Part shown: positions 933 to 11,299 of the stretch, piece by piece
How positions within the stretch are numbered: the first letter of the stretch is position 1
Layout: each line of letters begins with the position of its first letter
IMG/VR virus record: IMGVR_UViG_3300046653_000093
Span: 1-64,000 of that record
Direction: 5' to 3' (one strand)
DNA: 64,000 nucleotides
Program-made: the position numbers and the translations under genes
Notes under the pieces: generated by a model
Database searches by the model: none
Told to the model about the DNA's origin: nothing
Seen by the model: the letters and a program-made list of their open reading frames with translations, nothing else

Positions 933-1214
933 ATGTTAGTAAAATCAGCGAACTTATTTGGTAGTCCCGTAGAACTTGATGACGCTTGGATAGCAGATCA
1001 TAAAGATCATTCTTTGTGCTGGATGAATCATACTGTATTCGATAAGAAAAAGAATATTAGCCATATATTCAAAGAATGCATATGTTACTCTTGCACAAAG
1101 ATAGCTCGGAAGTTGATTGGAGATATTGGTCAGATTAAAGCTCCAGTAACTTCCGATAAGAAGGCGAAAGTAATAAAGGGTAGGCGAAGTAAAATTGAGA
1201 GTGTATTCTTTTAG
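933..1214 (+). CDS. hypothetical protein
   Basis: ORF with GAGGTG SD upstream; ends in TAG. Confidence 0.55.
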   Translation: MLVKSANLFGSPVELDDAWIADHKDHSLCWMNHTVFDKKKNISHIFKECICYSCTKIARKLIGDIGQIKAPVTSDKKAKVIKGRRSKIESVFF

Positions 1215-1302
1215 GTCGAGAGTCTTAGCCAGAAAAACTTAATAACCCAGTCCTAGTTTGCCTTCCCGTAGTTCTAGGACTGGGTTAATTTATTGGGACA
1301 AA

Positions 1303-1641
1303 ATGAAACGCCAAATATTCAAGTCAAAGATCCATCGAGCAACCGTAACTGGATCAAATATAGACTACGAAGGTAGTGTTACGATTGACTCTAATTTAAT
1401 GCGAGCGGCTGATATTGTTCCATATGAGGCAGTTCATATTTGGAACATAACTAACGGTTCACGCCTTTTCACATACGCCATTCAGGGTGATAATGACAGC
1501 GGAGAAATTTGTATCAATGGCGCTGGGGCAAAGCTGTGCAATGTTGGAGATCTAGTTATTATCGCAACATTTACCGAGATGACAAACAAAGTAGCCCGCA
1601 AGTGGATACCAAGGGTTGCCAGCAGTTCAACGGAAACTTGA
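1303..1641 (+). CDS. panD: aspartate 1-decarboxylase; 3' end interrupted by IS607, native tail continues at 4681-4844
   Basis: [18 protein letters not shown] (Gly-Ser autocleavage site), [22 protein letters not shown]; removing the IS restores ...WIPRVILVDEKNKI. Confidence 0.93.
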
Positions 1642-1692
1642 CTAAAGTTACTTGACTCCGCTCAACCCGTGGGTAATCCTTTTATCAGATCG

Positions 1693-1888
1693 GATGTACA
1701 TGAAGATGAAAGTGGTTCGAGTTTCGGCCACTGAGTTCGAATTGGAAGACGGTAGGGTATTTCCCCACGTCACCCCACTCGAACCGGTTCCGACTCCCGA
1801 AGAGTTTCAAGTACATTACGACCTGTGGTCAGATCGGTTGAAGTCCAAGGATGTCCAGTGGCCTCGTTTCGCTCAAAAAAGCGGCTGA
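1693..1888 (+). CDS. small hypothetical protein inside the IS607 left end
   Basis: ORF overlapping the tnpA start; start codon uncertain. Confidence 0.5.
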
Positions 1889-2474
1889 AATCCTTGGTTG
1901 TGGTACCTCGACGCTTCGGACTTGGGACAAGAACAAGAGCCTCGTAGCCGTTAGAACCCCAGGTGGTCAGCGCCGGTACCGCACTGAAGACCTAGACCGC
2001 TTCCAAGGGATCATCAAAAAGACCTCCAAGATGTCGGAAAATGTCGCTGTCTACGCTCGGGTTTCGAGCCATGAGCAGAAGGCTAAGGGCGACCTTGACC
2101 GTCAAAAGGGAAGGCTTCTAGAGCATTGCGTCAAGCAGAGCTACTCGGTGACGCATGTCATGGAGGAAGTCGGATCTGGGATGACGGACACTCGGCCGAA
2201 GATGCTCCGCCTTCTTGAGTTGGCCACGAGGGGCGAGATTGGGCGGGTGGTTATCGAGCACAAGGATCGACTCGCGAGGTTCAACTTCAACATATTCCAA
2301 AAGTTCTTCGAGAGTCATGGTGTACAGGTTGAGTGGCTGGAAAACGTGCTCCCAAAGTCCTACGAGGCCGAACTAGTCGAGGATATGGTCAGCCTCATGT
2401 CCAGCTTCTCAGCCAAAGTTTACGGAAAACGGAGCGCTGAGAACCGCCGAAAGAAGAAGCAAGAGGCCGCCTGA
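1851..2474 (+). CDS. tnpA: IS607 transposase (MerR-type HTH plus serine recombinase)
   Basis: AAEILG..TLRTWD..RTPGGQRRY HTH; YARVSS catalytic motif; EHKDRLARF; ELVEDMVSLMSSFSAKVYGKRS. Confidence 0.95.
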   Translation: MSSGLVSLKKAAEILGCGTSTLRTWDKNKSLVAVRTPGGQRRYRTEDLDRFQGIIKKTSKMSENVAVYARVSSHEQKAKGDLDRQKGRLLEHCVKQSYSVTHVMEEVGSGMTDTRPKMLRLLELATRGEIGRVVIEHKDRLARFNFNIFQKFFESHGVQVEWLENVLPKSYEAELVEDMVSLMSSFSAKVYGKRSAENRRKKKQEAA

Positions 2475-2809
2475 TGGAACCTAATGAGTCAAAGATTGAG
2501 GTTTTCGCAAGGTGGTACGGGTATCCGTCTGTCTACTGTCAAGCGAGCACACCAGATTACCGATATGTCGTAGCTATCCCTAGACTCCCCTACAACATAC
2601 TGGAAGAATTCAAGAAGGAACTGGACTCTCACTCCTCCGATGGTGATCCATACTTCGTGTTTGAATACTCAGATCAGTTCCTCAGTATAGCCGGTACCTT
2701 TGATATTCCGCGTAACCACTGTGAGAGTTGGGTGCAATGCTACTTGACTGCCCGCCCTGAGGGTGGGCTCAGATTCAAAAACGAGCCATGGTCAGAAAGG
2801 AACCCATGA
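2474..2809 (+). CDS. hypothetical cargo protein in IS607
   Basis: start overlaps the tnpA stop (TGATG). Confidence 0.6.
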   Translation: MEPNESKIEVFARWYGYPSVYCQASTPDYRYVVAIPRLPYNILEEFKKELDSHSSDGDPYFVFEYSDQFLSIAGTFDIPRNHCESWVQCYLTARPEGGLRFKNEPWSERNP

Positions 2810-3222
2810 CAAGTTACTCCAACTTCTTTGAGATGCTGGACGCTATTGAAGCGAAGATGCAAGACCCACGTTGTAAGGAGGCTGGACTCACCCCTTACAC
2901 AGGGGAGCCTCTACTAACGAGTATGGATCTTGGGTGGATCGTTGCGCTTCCCCTAAGCGAACGGGACGAAACATTCCAGTTCAGTGTGAGTCTACGTCAG
3001 ATAAAGATTGACCGGCAAGATCCTAGATGGGCCGATGCTTATGCCAGGCTCCAATCATTTACGACCCACTTCATTACATGTCCAAAGCATGGGGTGGTTA
3101 AAGGCATCCCGATACACAAGCTTCAAGGCAAGAAAGAGGGATCTGAGACGCTGGTATGCATACCTTGTGTGGCTGAGCGCATGGTGAATCCTGTTCGAAC
3201 TTCAGCCAATCTCTCGATATGA
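2788..3222 (+). CDS. hypothetical cargo protein in IS607 (CxxH/CxxC Zn motif)
   Basis: ORF between cargo 1 and tnpB; ATGA overlap with tnpB. Confidence 0.6.
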   Translation: MVRKEPMTSYSNFFEMLDAIEAKMQDPRCKEAGLTPYTGEPLLTSMDLGWIVALPLSERDETFQFSVSLRQIKIDRQDPRWADAYARLQSFTTHFITCPKHGVVKGIPIHKLQGKKEGSETLVCIPCVAERMVNPVRTSANLSI

Positions 3223-4646
3223 AGAAATGTCGGTTCTTCATGCTGCATCCTGAGTGCAACCCTGGGAAGATTCAATCCCTGGAAGCTCTTCACGTCGAGT
3301 ACATAGCTTATGTCCGGATCTGCGTTCAGACGATGCTCAAAGCCCATAGGCTGACTTTGCCCCGCTCGGAGAAGCAGGACTTCTTCCCCAGGGCTGAGAA
3401 GCTTACGTCTCAGATTGAGAAAAACGCCCGCGACCATGCCATCCAGATTGTGAGCACTTGGGCTAAGTCGGTTTATGCCAGGAAGATCAAGACTTTCATC
3501 AGGTTATCTTTCAAAGAGGGGAACTTTGACGAGGACTTCTGTAAGCAGCTTTACACGGTGGGTAAGTACTTGATTCATGAGCCGAAGGAAACCGTGTCCC
3601 AGGAAGCAATTGATCTGTATTGGTCTTGGCTCTCTGACCCAGAAGTAGTGGGGAACCCGCCTTCCATATCCAGTCGGATTCCAATGAGGATGTCGGAGAA
3701 CACCTGCTCATTGGAAGACCCAGAAGAGGCTACCCACGCGGATCTTTGGCTCAAGATCTCAACTTTGATTTCTCGGAAGCTTGCTTGGCTACCACTGGTT
3801 GGGAACCCATACGTCAAGAAGTCATCTGACGTAAGTAAGGGAATCCACGCTAGAAAAGACCGAAAGGGCCGTTGGCGGTTCGAAGCCGTTGATACCAAAG
3901 AGTGGTTGGTCTGCGAGGCCGAACCTGACTTACCCAGGATTGGAGTCGATGTAGGACTAAACGTGGTAGCGGCTACTTCGAGCGGACACGTGTTTGGGGC
4001 CTACCTAAAACCCAAGTTCAACAGGCTCTACGACAAGGTCAGGGAAGTCAGGGCGAACCGCCAAAGGCAGGATCTCAAGGAGAACAGTCCTAGGCTAGAC
4101 CGACTAGAATCACGCCTCTCTGGCTTGACCAAGAGCTTCACGGGACGGGTATCCAATGAACTGATCCGAACGTACTCTGAGTCCGTCTTCGTCTTAGAAG
4201 ACCTAGATCTTCGTGGTTGTCGTGGGCAAAAACGCTTCTGTTACAGGGAATTAGCTCATGCCCTTGAATCAAAGGCTCCAACTGAAAAGGTGAATCCGGC
4301 CTACAGTTCTCAGACATGCCCTTCGTGTGGGCATGTCTCTAGATACAATCGGGCTGGAATAGATTTCATCTGTCGCCAGTGCGGCAGGATTTCACATGCC
4401 GACGTGGTAGGAGGGATCAATTTGCTCGGACGTTCCGAGAGCAAACAGATTGGCCTCGATGATCATCCGTCGGAAGTGAAGGGAGTGCTTGTGAGGCTAT
4501 ACTGGTCTAGGAGGAATCCGGATCAGGACTGTCCACAAGACTTCTTGAATAAATACGCGCCATTACCGTATGGCCGAAGGCTTACTACCAGGGGACTCTC
4601 TCGAAAGAGAAGCACTGGCATAGCTTTTAATCAGGTAGCTGCTTGA
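3219..4646 (+). CDS. tnpB: TnpB RNA-guided nuclease
   Basis: RuvC-I IGVDVGLN, RuvC-II VLEDL, Zn finger CPSC..CRQC, RuvC-III HADVVGGINL. Confidence 0.93.
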   Translation: MKKCRFFMLHPECNPGKIQSLEALHVEYIAYVRICVQTMLKAHRLTLPRSEKQDFFPRAEKLTSQIEKNARDHAIQIVSTWAKSVYARKIKTFIRLSFKEGNFDEDFCKQLYTVGKYLIHEPKETVSQEAIDLYWSWLSDPEVVGNPPSISSRIPMRMSENTCSLEDPEEATHADLWLKISTLISRKLAWLPLVGNPYVKKSSDVSKGIHARKDRKGRWRFEAVDTKEWLVCEAEPDLPRIGVDVGLNVVAATSSGHVFGAYLKPKFNRLYDKVREVRANRQRQDLKENSPRLDRLESRLSGLTKSFTGRVSNELIRTYSESVFVLEDLDLRGCRGQKRFCYRELAHALESKAPTEKVNPAYSSQTCPSCGHVSRYNRAGIDFICRQCGRISHADVVGGINLLGRSESKQIGLDDHPSEVKGVLVRLYWSRRNPDQDCPQDFLNKYAPLPYGRRLTTRGLSRKRSTGIAFNQVAA

Positions 4647-4680
4647 CTACACGTAAGTTTGAGCAACTTCTTGAGTACGG

Positions 4681-4844
4681 TAATCCTGGTTGATGAAAAA
4701 AACAAGATAACACCCATTGTTGGTATTGCTATCGATCTGGAAACCGCACCCATTAGGCCTGATGAAAAAAAACCAACTACAATAATGGTGAACACTAATT
4801 ACTGGCAGAACCCTATCGGAACTAATAGCACAGGTATCGGATGA
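4681..4844 (+). pseudogene. panD: displaced native 3' end of panD
   Basis: (V)ILVDEKNKI matches the usual PanD C-terminal strand; in frame with 1303 once the IS is removed. Confidence 0.8.
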
Positions 4845-5125
4845 AATCTTTCATACCTCAAGCCTGGGCAATTCCGCCAGGTAGACATAGATCACAATTC
4901 AGAGTTGTAACTAAGTTCTTTGTATTCAAATATGTTTTACCAACTATTGTTGATGGATATTATCTTCAACAACGGCGATGGAAGCAAAATATTATACAGG
5001 AATATAAGGTAATTGGTGATTTGTATTGCGGATGTAGAGAAGTTCATAAATGGATTGATGTTTCTTGGTACGATAACTGCCTAGAAGCATGTGGTGATAC
5101 CTGCGACCTGCGACCCAGGCCATAG

Positions 5126-6373: not shown

Positions 6374-6642
6374 GAGTATACAATGCGAACATATACATTG
6401 TCACGAATTTATATTGATACAGAACACCAGAGAGATTGCTGTGGGGATATAAATTATACAAATAGTGAGCCATTTCTTATTATAAAGTGCAATGATGTCC
6501 CAATTAGATTTGCATCTGTTAAGAGCATTGAATCTAGTAGAGATATTTTTGAGAAACTAGACACTAACATCTTTACAGTTGAAGATATATTAGATGTTTT
6601 GTGTAAAAGTAAATTAACTATCTCACACGATATGGAAACATT

Positions 6643-7905
6643 ATGACTAGAACATTTGAATTAGGCGGCGAAGTAAACACTAGCAAAATAAGTTCTACTG
6701 TTAGTGTTCGTGACCAAATCATACAAAAAGTTGGTGGGGATATTGAACAGGTTTGCGAGCTTGGTCATCCTCTAATCGGCGGAAAACCAGGATATCGTGA
6801 TGAATCGTATATATCAAATCTAGTTGGTCTAGCCCACCTTTCATTCTCTAGTCACCGCCATATGATATTGGATCCAGATGCAGTCTGGATTACAATCGAA
6901 CATGGGCTGGCAACTCACATCAAAGAGAATGCCGAAGCTCTTCGTGACAAGTTCGTTTCATTCAAGGGCAAACGAACAATCGATATCAGGCGAGACGAAT
7001 TTAGGCGCGGCTCAATCAATAATTGGGAGGGATGCTTTGATGAGTTCTCGGAGAAGATTGGGGAATTTATCGGCCCAAAGAAAGATTTGATTGTCGGAAA
7101 TTTCTCGACCACAGGACAGCTACAAAGAGTATCCTCCGAAATTGTTCTGATGGATGCTATGAGTAAATACTTCGATTACTCAGTCAAAACATGTTGTCAC
7201 ATTCCTGTGATAACCCTCACTGGTACTGTGGAAGATTGGGAACGCATCCGTGATAAGGTGAATTCATTTGATGAATTTGGTTTGTCTTGGTGGGCAGATC
7301 ACCTGAAGCCAGTCCTTGATCAATTAGTTCTAGCCGCTAAGGGAGAGGTTGATATTGACTTCTGGAAGAGCTGGTATAAAGAGGGCGGCGGTAGTGGTGG
7401 CCCATTTATCTCAGGACATGTCAACGCATTCTTTCCATATTTAGGAAGAGATAATAGTAAAAACAAGTATATGGGTACTTGTCCGTCTCATCACGGGAAT
7501 ACTCTATCCTCTTTCAACCAATCTATTTCTAAGGTTCCATTCATTTGGGATTACTATAACCAGGAATATCCTATGGAGTTTGTTGGTGGATTGATTGGGC
7601 TAACACAAGATGACTCTGGCCGTGTTCAATGTTCCTTTGGCTGGGCTGTTCGAGATGAGTCAGTTCCACTCTCTAATTACCCAATCGAGAAGCTTGTGAA
7701 GGATATGGTCATCCACAACAAAGATGGAGAGGCCGGATTATTGAAGAGAGCTGAGGCAGAGCATTGGGATAATGCTCCAGATGACAAGCAGCTTTACGAA
7801 GTTCAAATCGAATGGAAAGACGGTTTGAAGACTTATAAGCAATGGGATTTTAATAATTTGTTCGTCAAAGAACCTGCTAATGGAGAGCAGATGGTGGTAG
7901 AGTAA
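6643..7905 (+). CDS. DUF4419-like protein
   Basis: PDAVWITI, HIKENAEALRDKFVSFKGK, NFSTT, LMDAMSKYFDY, GGPFISG. Confidence 0.8.
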   Translation: MTRTFELGGEVNTSKISSTVSVRDQIIQKVGGDIEQVCELGHPLIGGKPGYRDESYISNLVGLAHLSFSSHRHMILDPDAVWITIEHGLATHIKENAEALRDKFVSFKGKRTIDIRRDEFRRGSINNWEGCFDEFSEKIGEFIGPKKDLIVGNFSTTGQLQRVSSEIVLMDAMSKYFDYSVKTCCHIPVITLTGTVEDWERIRDKVNSFDEFGLSWWADHLKPVLDQLVLAAKGEVDIDFWKSWYKEGGGSGGPFISGHVNAFFPYLGRDNSKNKYMGTCPSHHGNTLSSFNQSISKVPFIWDYYNQEYPMEFVGGLIGLTQDDSGRVQCSFGWAVRDESVPLSNYPIEKLVKDMVIHNKDGEAGLLKRAEAEHWDNAPDDKQLYEVQIEWKDGLKTYKQWDFNNLFVKEPANGEQMVVE

Positions 7906-7906
7906 T

Positions 7907-8785
7907 ATGCCAACAAGAATCATTGCATTAGGTACAGGCTCTGCCTTCACAATGAACAACTACCAAACTAACTTTGTCATCAAAAGAAATGGCAAGTATC
8001 TTTTGGTAGATTGTGGTGGCGATGTCAGATTTAGCCTTAGAGATCAGGGCCTGTCTGCCAAGGATATAGATGCTGTCTATATTTCACATGCTCACGCAGA
8101 TCATGTGGGCGGCATGGAGTTCTTGGCATTCACACGCTACTTTACAAAGAGATCAATGGAAAATGCTAGGGCCCTCGCGCGAACTGTCGATCCTGAGCAT
8201 TCCCCAGAGCCACTTCAATTACCAGTGCTATTCTGTGAGCATGGGATGATTCGAACACTTTGGGATCACTCATTACGAGGAGGTCTCGAAGGACTTGAGG
8301 GAATCGACGCCAACATCGACACCTATTTCAGGGTACATCCAGTGCCAAAAAACGGATCGTTCGAGTGGGAGGGCTTGAAGTTCGATATCGTTCAAAGCCT
8401 TCATGTCTCTGCTAAATATAGTATTGTTGATTCATTCGGGCTGATGTTTACTGATGATATTGGGTATCGAATATTCATCACTACAGATGTTCAGTTCGCC
8501 CCAGAGACATCTATGAAAGCCTATTACAAAGAGGCTGATGTCATAATTCATGACTGCGAAACAGGATTCAAAAGCGGAGTTCACGCCCATTACGATCAGC
8601 TAAGGACATTGGATAATAGCATTAAGAATAAGATGCTTTTGGTTCACTACCAAGACAATGTCTTGGAAGATTGGAATGCGTGGGTGGACAAGGCCAACCA
8701 GGACGGCTTCGACGGATTCGTCAAGCCTGGGCCGATTTGGTCTGATGAACCACCTGACGTAATCGCAGCAACAACGAATGTTTGA
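7907..8785 (+). CDS. MBL-fold metallo-hydrolase (RNase Z/phosphodiesterase-like)
   Basis: LGTGSAF, LVDCG, SHAHADH motif, HDCE, GVHAH, LVHY. Confidence 0.88.
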   Translation: MPTRIIALGTGSAFTMNNYQTNFVIKRNGKYLLVDCGGDVRFSLRDQGLSAKDIDAVYISHAHADHVGGMEFLAFTRYFTKRSMENARALARTVDPEHSPEPLQLPVLFCEHGMIRTLWDHSLRGGLEGLEGIDANIDTYFRVHPVPKNGSFEWEGLKFDIVQSLHVSAKYSIVDSFGLMFTDDIGYRIFITTDVQFAPETSMKAYYKEADVIIHDCETGFKSGVHAHYDQLRTLDNSIKNKMLLVHYQDNVLEDWNAWVDKANQDGFDGFVKPGPIWSDEPPDVIAATTNV

Positions 8786-9964: not shown

Positions 9965-11299
9965 ATGAATCGCGTTCAAGAAGTAAAAAAAGCCTTTCCT
10001 GAATTTGCCAGTTTAGCTATCGAGACGGCAGACCCAAAACATAAGAACAAATACCTTATGTGGATTGCCTCTCAATTGGCTAAGAAATACAGCCCGGAAG
10101 ATATCCGATCAACGATATCGTCCTTTCATAAAGACTCAAGGCGTCTTCGAAAATCTGACATATATTCATATCCAGATTTGAAAGTTCTTGATAACGAGAT
10201 CAAAGACCTAGCGATGAGCAAGCGGCAGGTTGAGATCTTCTCTAAAGAAATGGGCGCTGTGAAGATATTCGGCGATGAGTCTTGCACACTCGTGAGGATA
10301 AATAGCAAGACCGCCATGCTGTACTACGGTAAAGCATCTAAGTGGTGTATTGCCATGGAATCTGAAGAGTATTGGGAAGACTATAGCTCTAGCGGGAATG
10401 TCTTCTATGTCCTTTTGGATAAAGAAAATCAGCGCAAGTATGCCATCCAGAAAAAAGGACTGATGGATGTTACAATCTGGGAAGAGGATGACGACGAAGT
10501 AGATGATATTGATGATTGGGTTAAGCGCAACGACAAGTTCGAATCTGCAGTATTTGCATGTCTTCACGATCGTGAAGAACCAATGCTTTACCGTATAAAG
10601 AGAGGTCTCACCACTCGCCAAGAAGTATCTGAATGGATAAAGTACCAGAATCAAAACACCATTAAGTTCTTGCATAATATGACTGGTGTTGGGTATTATC
10701 TCTTTGATCCTGCATCGGTAACTAGAAAAACAATCAAGTTATTATCCACACTCAATATTAAGTACCTTGAAGCTATCAGTGCAGAGTATCCTAACTTCAT
10801 TACTGATGTTGCTAATTTCTTGGCAGCAAATCCCAAGGTAGTTTTTAAAAGCTTTAGATTTAGATTGGCCCATCTACTTCCAGATCCAGATCTCATTCTA
10901 AATGAAGAAGATGCAAACTTCATTAAGATGAATACAGATCCTTCAATAGCGTCTAAACTTCTTACAAGTAAAAAGCAAGAAGTGTGGAGTAAGGCGCTTC
11001 TGGTTGCAAAGCCATCAACAATCGTCTCTATATTACCCTCAGTAAAGAGAACTCAAAAGAGAGAGTTCATTCGCAGATTGAAAATGCGAACAGATTATGC
11101 CAAATTAATAGAATGGCTGGCTGCTACAAATCTTCAAATACCCAATGAAGTTTGGCTGAGTAAAGCAAAGGGACAATACGGCGAATACGCCGAAGAAGAC
11201 AAGTGCACTGAAGAAGATGAAGAGTGTGATGAGGAAGAAGACTCGGAAGTAATCGTTGGTGTCACCGGTTCCCAACCGATGACCGATGCCTTCCACTGA
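9965..11299 (+). CDS. hypothetical phage protein with acidic tail
   Basis: 444-aa ORF containing a YGKASKWCIA motif. Confidence 0.7.
   Translation: MNRVQEVKKAFPEFASLAIETADPKHKNKYLMWIASQLAKKYSPEDIRSTISSFHKDSRRLRKSDIYSYPDLKVLDNEIKDLAMSKRQVEIFSKEMGAVKIFGDESCTLVRINSKTAMLYYGKASKWCIAMESEEYWEDYSSSGNVFYVLLDKENQRKYAIQKKGLMDVTIWEEDDDEVDDIDDWVKRNDKFESAVFACLHDREEPMLYRIKRGLTTRQEVSEWIKYQNQNTIKFLHNMTGVGYYLFDPASVTRKTIKLLSTLNIKYLEAISAEYPNFITDVANFLAANPKVVFKSFRFRLAHLLPDPDLILNEEDANFIKMNTDPSIASKLLTSKKQEVWSKALLVAKPSTIVSILPSVKRTQKREFIRRLKMRTDYAKLIEWLAATNLQIPNEVWLSKAKGQYGEYAEEDKCTEEDEECDEEEDSEVIVGVTGSQPMTDAFH

Follow-up and report, generated by a model that had tools for sequence, protein, structure and literature searches.

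Insertion sequences (ISs) of the IS607 family transpose through a circular double-stranded intermediate in a reaction catalysed by their transposase, TnpA. As a rule they carry only tnpA and tnpB, and their targeting of GG and their G-rich target-adjacent motifs (TAMs) are well described; most IS607 TnpBs have AGGAG or GAGGG as their TAM (review, PMC13565253). Rare cargo genes and an extra small protein, many without recognisable domains, have been reported for the 'Ser-3' branch of serine-recombinase TnpB transposons (Altae-Tran et al. 2023, PMC10691335). Here, we analyse an IS607-family element that splits the gene panD in a 64,000-nucleotide stretch of viral DNA (the window) from IMG/VR record IMGVR_UViG_3300046653_000093. 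The element departs from the usual IS607 content by three additional open reading frames (ORFs), ORF1, ORF2 and ORF3. Very probably, positions 1616-4680 of the window are a copy of an IS607 lineage circulating among very large phages from peat, soil and freshwater sediment, and its cargo moves with the element.

A precise insertion splits panD

Positions 1616-4680 hold foreign DNA. As the original prediction had claimed, its removal restores PanD: joining position 1615 to 4681 gives CCA AGG GTA ATC CTG GTT GAT, reading ...IPRVILVDEKNKI, and a protein of 158 amino acids (aa). The rejoined PanD can be aligned over its full length with intact homologues (142-162 aa, 73-79% identical), and its second half (VILVDEKNKITPIVGIAIDLETAPIRP…NYWQNPIGTNSTGIG) matches them residue for residue. 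The C-terminal motif NY.q.PIGTNSTGIG is common to the rejoined protein and the homologues, and the ending PIGTNSTGIG is also found in P0014, P0019 and P0026. In two related phages (contigs L040 and L042) panD is unbroken at the syntenic locus and has the same neighbours as in the window: upstream there is a small ORF, and downstream are genes for DUF4419 and cytidyltransferase/NUDIX proteins. Aligned with L040 by blastn, the rejoined window matches across the junction with no gap. Because the deletion restores a gene that matches its homologues, and because the syntenic panD genes of L040 and L042 are unbroken, the split is real, precise and far beyond chance. The G+C content is 0.48-0.57 within the element (~1600-4700) and 0.38-0.42 in the flanks. 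The 3,065-bp insert is present in several independent assemblies, which makes an assembly artefact unlikely. The features of the locus are:

1303-1615, plus strand: panD 5' part, from the ATG at 1303 through codons 1-104 to the first base of codon 105
1611-1615, plus strand: candidate TAM/target motif AAGGG, its final GG being the IS607 crossover dinucleotide
1616-4680, plus strand: IS607-family element, 3,065 bp
1616-1699, plus strand: left end, with ACTTGAC repeats (1636-1642, 1650-1656) and TCAAC motifs, from alignments of five copies
1700-1888, plus strand: ORF1, 62 aa, overlapping the start of tnpA by 38 nucleotides (nt)
1851-2474, plus strand: tnpA, IS607-type serine transposase of 207 aa with a MerR-like helix-turn-helix (HTH) and a resolvase domain, VYARVSS
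2474-2809, plus strand: ORF2, 111 aa, cargo gene 1, member of a rare ORFan family of phages
2806-3222, plus strand: ORF3, 138 aa, cargo gene 2, with a C-terminal CxxH…CxxC motif
3219-4646, plus strand: tnpB, 475 aa, with RuvC residues D244/E327/D395 and a zinc ribbon (C367/C370/C385/C388)
4556-4680, plus strand: predicted omega-RNA (ωRNA) scaffold, a conserved structure possibly starting from ~4404 and overlapping the last 30 tnpB codons
4681-4700, plus strand: predicted guide segment TAATCCTGGTTGATGAAAAA, placed by analogy with TnpB/ωRNA architecture (PMC13565253), equal to the first bases of the panD 3' part
4681-4844, plus strand: panD 3' part, from the last 2 bases of codon 105 to the stop codon, with the frame kept open

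As present in the window, the panD ORF reads into the element and stops at 1639-1641, so that the insertion removes the last ~54 residues of PanD. The remaining part has homologues with 76-79% identity, matches the TIGR00223 panD profile over residues 1-107 with 123.7 bits (cut-off 106) and contains the Gly-Ser self-cleavage site as YEGS. In this phage, a metabolic gene has clearly been knocked out by a transposon.

The window corresponds to bases 157,445-221,444 of the 391,957-bp record, for which CheckV estimates a completeness of 91%. Its large ORFs match phage families (PhoH-like, cytidyltransferase/NUDIX and several PHROGs without assigned function), and the public runs containing the stretch are mostly peat metagenomes. 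A very large phage (~392 kb) from peat is a reasonable source. A scan for PanD in viral contigs yielded nothing beyond another record of this phage (L002, 7,614 bases identical).

Two further features of the panD region were observed. The PanD clade formed by the window protein and homologues P0010-P0028, which come mostly from large unbinned or viral contigs, is extended at the C-terminus by 20-40 residues, often ending in PIGTNSTGIG, and this extension has no counterpart in the 126-position TIGR00223 profile. In L040, an ORF resembling LAGLIDADG proteins (6479-7528; a faint Pfam match) lies between the DUF4419 and cytidyltransferase genes, where the window has other small ORFs; it may be another mobile gene nearby.

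Identical ends at unrelated sites define the lineage

ORF2 homologues and short motifs from the element ends served as queries, and related copies were recovered from metagenomic and viral contigs. In L003, L004, L017/L025 and L022/L024, similarity to the element (78-92%) starts exactly at 1616 and stops exactly at 4680, and the flanks are unrelated. Identical ends are found in at least five more independent insertions, all of them at unrelated sites: a left flank ending in RGGG is followed by TTGCCAGCAG … GAGTACGG and then T. The start TTGCCAGCAG is found in all copies but one, which has TTGGAGCAG; the end is GAGCAACTTCTTGAGTACGG, again followed by T.

At the window locus the left flank ends in AAGGG and the right end in TACGG. 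GGT is common to both junctions (1614-1616 and 4679-4681), which leaves the crossover register ambiguous, and every register gives the same rejoined gene. Beyond this repeated GGT there is neither a target-site duplication nor a terminal inverted repeat. These junctions, and the identical ends at the five other sites, bear out the claim of an insertion at GG in a phage panD gene without duplication. Of the simple GG target that had been proposed, the GG-adjacent insertion stands, but the target is more specific: all six left flanks of independent insertions (caaGGG, gaaGGG, tagGGG, aaaGGG, caaGGG and gaaGGG) conform to A(A/G)GGG, and at the right end ACGG is followed by T. The left-flank motif resembles known IS607 TAMs, and we infer that it is a candidate TAM here.

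Motifs similar to the repeats of the left end (CTTGAC, TTTGAG and CTTGAG) occur within the final 45 nt at the right end, the general form in the ends being (A/G/T)(C/T)TTGA(C/G). By analogy, these repeated motifs are probably TnpA binding sites. A miniature of ~83 bp was seen in L016 (Ga0180007_10008120, ~1109-1191), where a half resembling the left end is joined to the final 26 nt of the right end, between flanks of gaaGGG and T. It looks like a derivative resembling miniature inverted-repeat transposable elements, which TnpA could mobilise in trans.

Some matches to parts of the element were discarded. The 17-mer left-end matches in L010-L012 are chance hits with no other similarity to the element, and the same holds for most 20-mer right-end matches in genome contigs (Flagellimonas/Allomuricauda, Propionivibrio), which are otherwise dissimilar to it. 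The internal GGGTAATCCT (1669-1678) matches the target site; a meaning for this match was rejected, since the same sequence is present in L004, which has a different target, and other copies have TAGATAATCCT. Among 185,579 species genomes, scanned for exact 20-mers only, no copy of the lineage was recovered. So far, the lineage has been seen only in large viral or metagenomic contigs.

ORF1 is part of the basic element, ORF2 and ORF3 are cargo

TnpA matches the full NF033518 profile (1-187) with 190.8 bits, against a cut-off of 110, and also phrog_6620. In the tnpA genes of related copies, Pfam recognises MerR/HTH_17 and Resolvase. The cargo-free copies L025 (2,320 bp) and L024 (2,318 bp) consist of left end, ORF1, tnpA, tnpB and right end, and their tnpA stop overlaps the tnpB start as GCATGAAG (ATGA). 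In the window, ORF2 and ORF3 (745 bp together) are placed exactly between these two genes. Direct reading confirmed the proposed overlaps of starts and stops, TGATG at 2472-2476, ATGA at 2806-2809 and ATGA at 3219-3222, which keep the operon continuous. Three extra ORFs had been proposed; ORF2 and ORF3 are indeed added relative to the 2.3-kb relatives, but the ORF before tnpA, ORF1, is present in every family member.

ORF1 is open, of equal length and 87-95% identical in all five full copies, the cargo-free ones included. Its DNA is more conserved than that of tnpA, with 21 of 151 variable columns versus 144 of 583, and its differences at first, second and third codon positions (7/3/11) give a weak signal. 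An AlphaFold model from five near-identical sequences has a predicted local distance difference test score (pLDDT) of ~90 for residues 1-50 and shows three short strands and a helix (β3-α), with no HTH. No match to ORF1 was found in the PDB (searched with the model, E ≤ 0.001), NCBIfam, PHROG or PADLOC; a look-alike cluster in the ESM Atlas has 121 members, 83% of them viral. Because the 2.3-kb copies have the order ORF1-tnpA-tnpB, ORF1 is a conserved family part and not cargo, and it is probably a small protein of the lineage's own instead of a passenger.

ORF2 occurs in L003 and L004 and is missing from L025 and L024. Its codon-position differences from L003 (15/10/50) indicate purifying selection. 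ORF3 is likewise missing from L025 and L024, is frameshifted by a 5-bp deletion in L003 and has another ORF in its place in L004; with differences of 13/17/33 from L003, it is less constrained than tnpA, ORF2 and tnpB. The cargo slot is thus variable in content, holding ORF2, the broken ORF3 and two more ORFs in L003, and an N-terminally extended ORF2 with an unrelated ORF in L004. The three cargo-bearing copies have one altered junction between the tnpA 3' end and ORF2 in common and lie at three different insertion sites. Because three ORF2-bearing copies combine a common junction with three sites, the cargo form has transposed after capture. The simplest reading of these sequences would be one cargo capture followed by transposition of the cargo-bearing form.

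The ORF2 family is small, as a profile search of 1.84 billion proteins matched only 10 representative clusters, and the structure model of ORF2 (pLDDT 56) was of too low quality for a structure search. Where their context is readable, distant ORF2 relatives are surrounded by small phage-like ORFs arranged in arrays, and neither a transposase nor TnpB is encoded nearby. Outside its element, the L004 phage carries a short stretch similar to the ORF3 C-terminus. Because of these two observations a phage origin is suggested, and the cargo resembles ordinary ORFan genes of huge phages that the element has acquired. Searches with ORF2, ORF3 and the cargo ORFs of the relatives gave no NCBIfam, PHROG or PADLOC match, except for a deoxyribosyltransferase in L004, and nothing usable in the ESM Atlas. 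The latter gene lies in the decayed L004 copy (10109-10549), where a phage nucleoside deoxyribosyltransferase gene (phrog_12607, E 4e-48) is found inside tnpB, again with a stop/start overlap.

According to the original prediction, relatives of the 2474-3222 ORFs outside IS ends would speak against their being cargo. Such relatives exist, both among the distant members of the ORF2 family and as a fragment in L006. The cargo status of the genes stands here nonetheless, because the three cargo copies have identical IS ends at three sites. The L006 fragment (7459-8311 of ERZ25039473 contig_49365, from the phage with intact panD at L040) comprises 826 bp that are 100% identical to window positions 2264-3089. 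It runs from the 3' part of tnpA through ORF2 into the 5' part of ORF3, is followed by 31 bp matching 3697-3727, and has no IS ends; the DNA around it is only 70-86% identical to the window genome. Either the piece stems from very recent recombination, or the assembly is chimeric here.

TnpB and the predicted right-end RNA

The prediction that TnpB keeps its three RuvC acidic residues was confirmed. D244, E327 and D395 lie in the motifs GVD244VG, LE327DLDL and HAD395, the zinc ribbon is formed by the CxxC pairs CPSC and CRQC, and the catalytic residues and zinc-ribbon cysteines do not vary among five homologues with identities down to 47%. TnpB also has weaker matches to the profiles NF038280 and NF038281 (IS607_TnpB, IS200_TnpB). 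Four intact tnpB copies are 86-89% identical as proteins, compared with ~84% as DNA. The codon-position differences from L003 are 49/24/155 for tnpB and 19/10/60 for tnpA, and this third-position-biased divergence indicates selection on tnpA, ORF2 and tnpB. Judged by its motifs, TnpB looks catalytically intact.

Matches of TnpB in the PDB comprise CasΦ, Cas12f and TnpB. The best solved-structure sequence match is CasΦ-3 (7odf), with E values of 3.5e-9 for the single sequence and 3.3e-11 for the family profile, limited to ~41 residues (357-398) in the zinc-ribbon/RuvC-III region. This similarity hints at CasΦ ancestry and should be taken as a lead, not a result. A solo TnpB homologue of 484 aa and 47% identity, with no tnpA upstream, was found in a 485-kb uncultured phage (L045, LR745208.1, 3998-5452). 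This record has three matching places.

The right-end RNA region is the most conserved part of the element. For the last 280 nt of eight distinct copies, an RNAalifold consensus has 89 pairs, 11 of which show compensatory changes. Over the last 130 nt (4556-4674), 97% of the cells are paired and seven pairs are compensatory; in controls with the 3' partners shifted by 1-3 columns, 29-54% are paired, with 0-2 compensatory pairs. A GNRA-capped hairpin at ~4598-4611 is TCTC-GAAA-GAGA, CCCC-GCAA-GGGG or TCTC-GTAA-GAGA, depending on the copy. A conserved RNA structure is predicted at the right end, where an omega-RNA had been expected. We predict that this structure is an ωRNA, with the first 16-20 nt of the right flank serving as its guide. 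A 262-nt contig of a peat metatranscriptome equals window positions 4573-4833 and is identical to the right junction and the panD tail; such a contig is blind to strand and RNA ends, and may stem from carried-over DNA.

Proposed mechanism and alternative explanations

If the element behaves as others of its family, TnpA would have crossed over at a GG within the motif AAGGG|T of panD and inserted the element without target duplication. The basic element is ~2.32 kb long, with left end, ORF1, tnpA, tnpB and right end in this order and the tnpA stop overlapping the tnpB start. One sub-lineage captured phage-derived small genes exactly at the tnpA/tnpB junction, the overlaps being kept so that the genes form one operon. 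The guide RNA would comprise the last ~130-280 nt of the element and ~16-20 nt of the right flank. TnpB with its ωRNA could cut the element-free panD allele, recognising the TAM AAGGG followed by TAATCCTGG… (target AAGGG-TAATCCTGGTTGATGA), and such cutting may help the element to be retained or to be copied into co-infecting genomes that are nearly identical. For homing and competition, current activity, ωRNA expression and the TAM, we infer this from family behaviour as set out in PMC13565253 and PMC10690162. The intact state of all element parts and the undecayed panD tail point to a fairly recent insertion.

Several results weigh against this reading. The element, and indeed any TnpB or IS607 TnpA, is present in a single copy in the 392-kb genome. 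The empty site was searched for in the viral collection as an exact 27-mer of the rejoined site and was not found, and no joints that skip the element or form a circle junction were seen in the contigs of four further runs; as these are assembled contigs, which drop rare variants, the missing empty site is not evidence of absence. Three peat DNA runs and one peat RNA library contained only pieces identical to the occupied allele, with one DNA contig spanning the left junction and one RNA-library contig the right (4573-4833). The lineage is not uniformly active, as decayed relatives are found in L004 (frameshifted tnpA, interrupted tnpB), L008 and L013, solo tnpB pseudogenes among them. TnpB scores 86 bits against NF040570 (guided_TnpB; residues 205-403), less than the cut-off of 100, and no NCBIfam profile matches its first 200 residues. 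The RNA structure, part of which overlaps coding sequence, was built from the eight sequences in which its pairs were then counted, so that its support is good but not independent, and an Rfam search of window positions 1200-5000 with E up to 1 found no ωRNA, RAGATH-18 or intron family.

Two parts of the original prediction are not supported by these data. One is that the element is probably active, in view of the single copy and of the lack of an empty site or circle junction in the contigs examined. The other is that its guide targets the empty panD of competing phages. The panD sites of known relatives differ from the window site in the presumed TAM and guide positions. Only near-identical element-free strains could be targets.

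The single copy, the absence of an empty allele or excision joint from the viral collection and the run contigs, and the decay of related copies would also fit an immobile relic that inserted once and became fixed, its genes persisting by recency and ORF2 and ORF3 representing ordinary phage gene gain in a dead element. The frameshift of ORF3 in L003 and the other phage gene inside the L004 tnpB are in line with this. Set against it are the five intact ORFs and both intact ends in the window, the divergence of tnpA, tnpB and ORF2 mainly at third positions between copies, the undecayed panD tail and three ORF2 copies with one capture junction at three target sites, which imply movement after capture. 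We regard a relic as unlikely. Far less probable still is that the phage has co-opted TnpB and its RNA to serve as weapon or regulator, such as by cutting the DNA of competing phages or of the host, with the transposon context secondary. The closest solved-structure match is to a huge-phage nuclease, CasΦ-3 (over 41 residues only), the huge phage LR745208.1 has a solo homologue without tnpA, and domestication of TnpB in phages is known, TldR being an example. Here, however, tnpB lies within intact IS ends beside an intact tnpA, and its catalytic residues are intact, unlike those of TldR. The guide position is simply the flank of each insertion and differs at every site, with no guide conserved, as expected for selfish homing, and the panD sites of relatives match neither guide nor TAM.

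The element is co-oriented with panD and lies inside its coding sequence, and IS607-type IStrons, which combine a group I intron with an IS, exist (PMC10690162). An IStron-like element might be spliced from the panD mRNA, and PanD would still be made. The Rfam search that returned neither a group I intron nor any other family, and a left end that is that of ordinary cargo-free IS copies at varied sites, make this scarcely credible. The reading of the element as a copy of a circulating phage-borne IS607 lineage with travelling cargo is the one we favour. A bolder extension of it would see the IS607/TnpB elements of huge phages as RNA-guided gene-drive vehicles that take up small phage genes in the slot between tnpA and tnpB and spread them through phage populations by homing during co-infection, and their clade perhaps also as the source of CasΦ/Cas12j. 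We hold this extension to be unlikely.

Comparison with known systems

The existence of cargo-free and cargo-bearing sisters with identical ends makes it testable how minimal RNA-guided transposons gain and spread passengers, and the same applies to TnpB homing between co-infecting phages and to the role of the conserved ORF1. The lineage supplies a compact TnpB of 475 aa with a candidate TAM, AAGGG, and a predicted RNA scaffold. Its weak but top-ranking similarity to CasΦ hints at the origin of this phage nuclease.

The closest described relatives are members of the IS607 family (IS607 of Helicobacter pylori, IS1535 and the ISCARN1-type elements of Thermus phages). In common with these, the window element has a serine TnpA with a MerR-like HTH and a same-strand tnpB downstream, lacks inverted repeats and a target duplication, terminates with GG and lies downstream of a GG within a G-rich motif. 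Occurrence in phages is a further likeness, as the Thermus phage copies are annotated as IS607 family. The window lineage differs from the family in the conserved 62-aa ORF1 upstream of and overlapping tnpA, and its sub-lineage in the variable, translationally coupled cargo slot between tnpA and tnpB.

With the TnpB/ωRNA systems of IS607 elements (OMEGA, short for obligate mobile element-guided activity), including those guided by RAGATH-18 (PMC11061315), the element has in common the RuvC D-E-D triad, the zinc ribbon, a G-rich left flank at the place of the TAM, and a predicted structured RNA that extends over the tnpB 3' end and finishes at the right end of the element. In contrast to these systems, the RNA matches neither RAGATH-18 nor any other Rfam family, and the protein lies below the NCBIfam cut-offs for TnpB. 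CasΦ/Cas12j resembles the window TnpB as its best solved-structure match and in having very large phages as hosts; however, the match covers ~41 residues, there is no array of clustered regularly interspaced short palindromic repeats (CRISPR), the protein has 475 instead of ~750 aa, and it is encoded inside a transposon.

Compared with the 'Ser-3' transposons, the cargo is here traced to phage ORFan families, cargo-free sisters are known, and the ORF1 model is without an HTH. Because of the survey in PMC10691335 and the IS607 copies of Thermus phages, neither this kind of element nor its occurrence in phages is new. What is new is a lineage, so far seen only in large viral or metagenomic contigs, that combines a conserved ORF1 with a coupled cargo slot and has cargo-free sisters.

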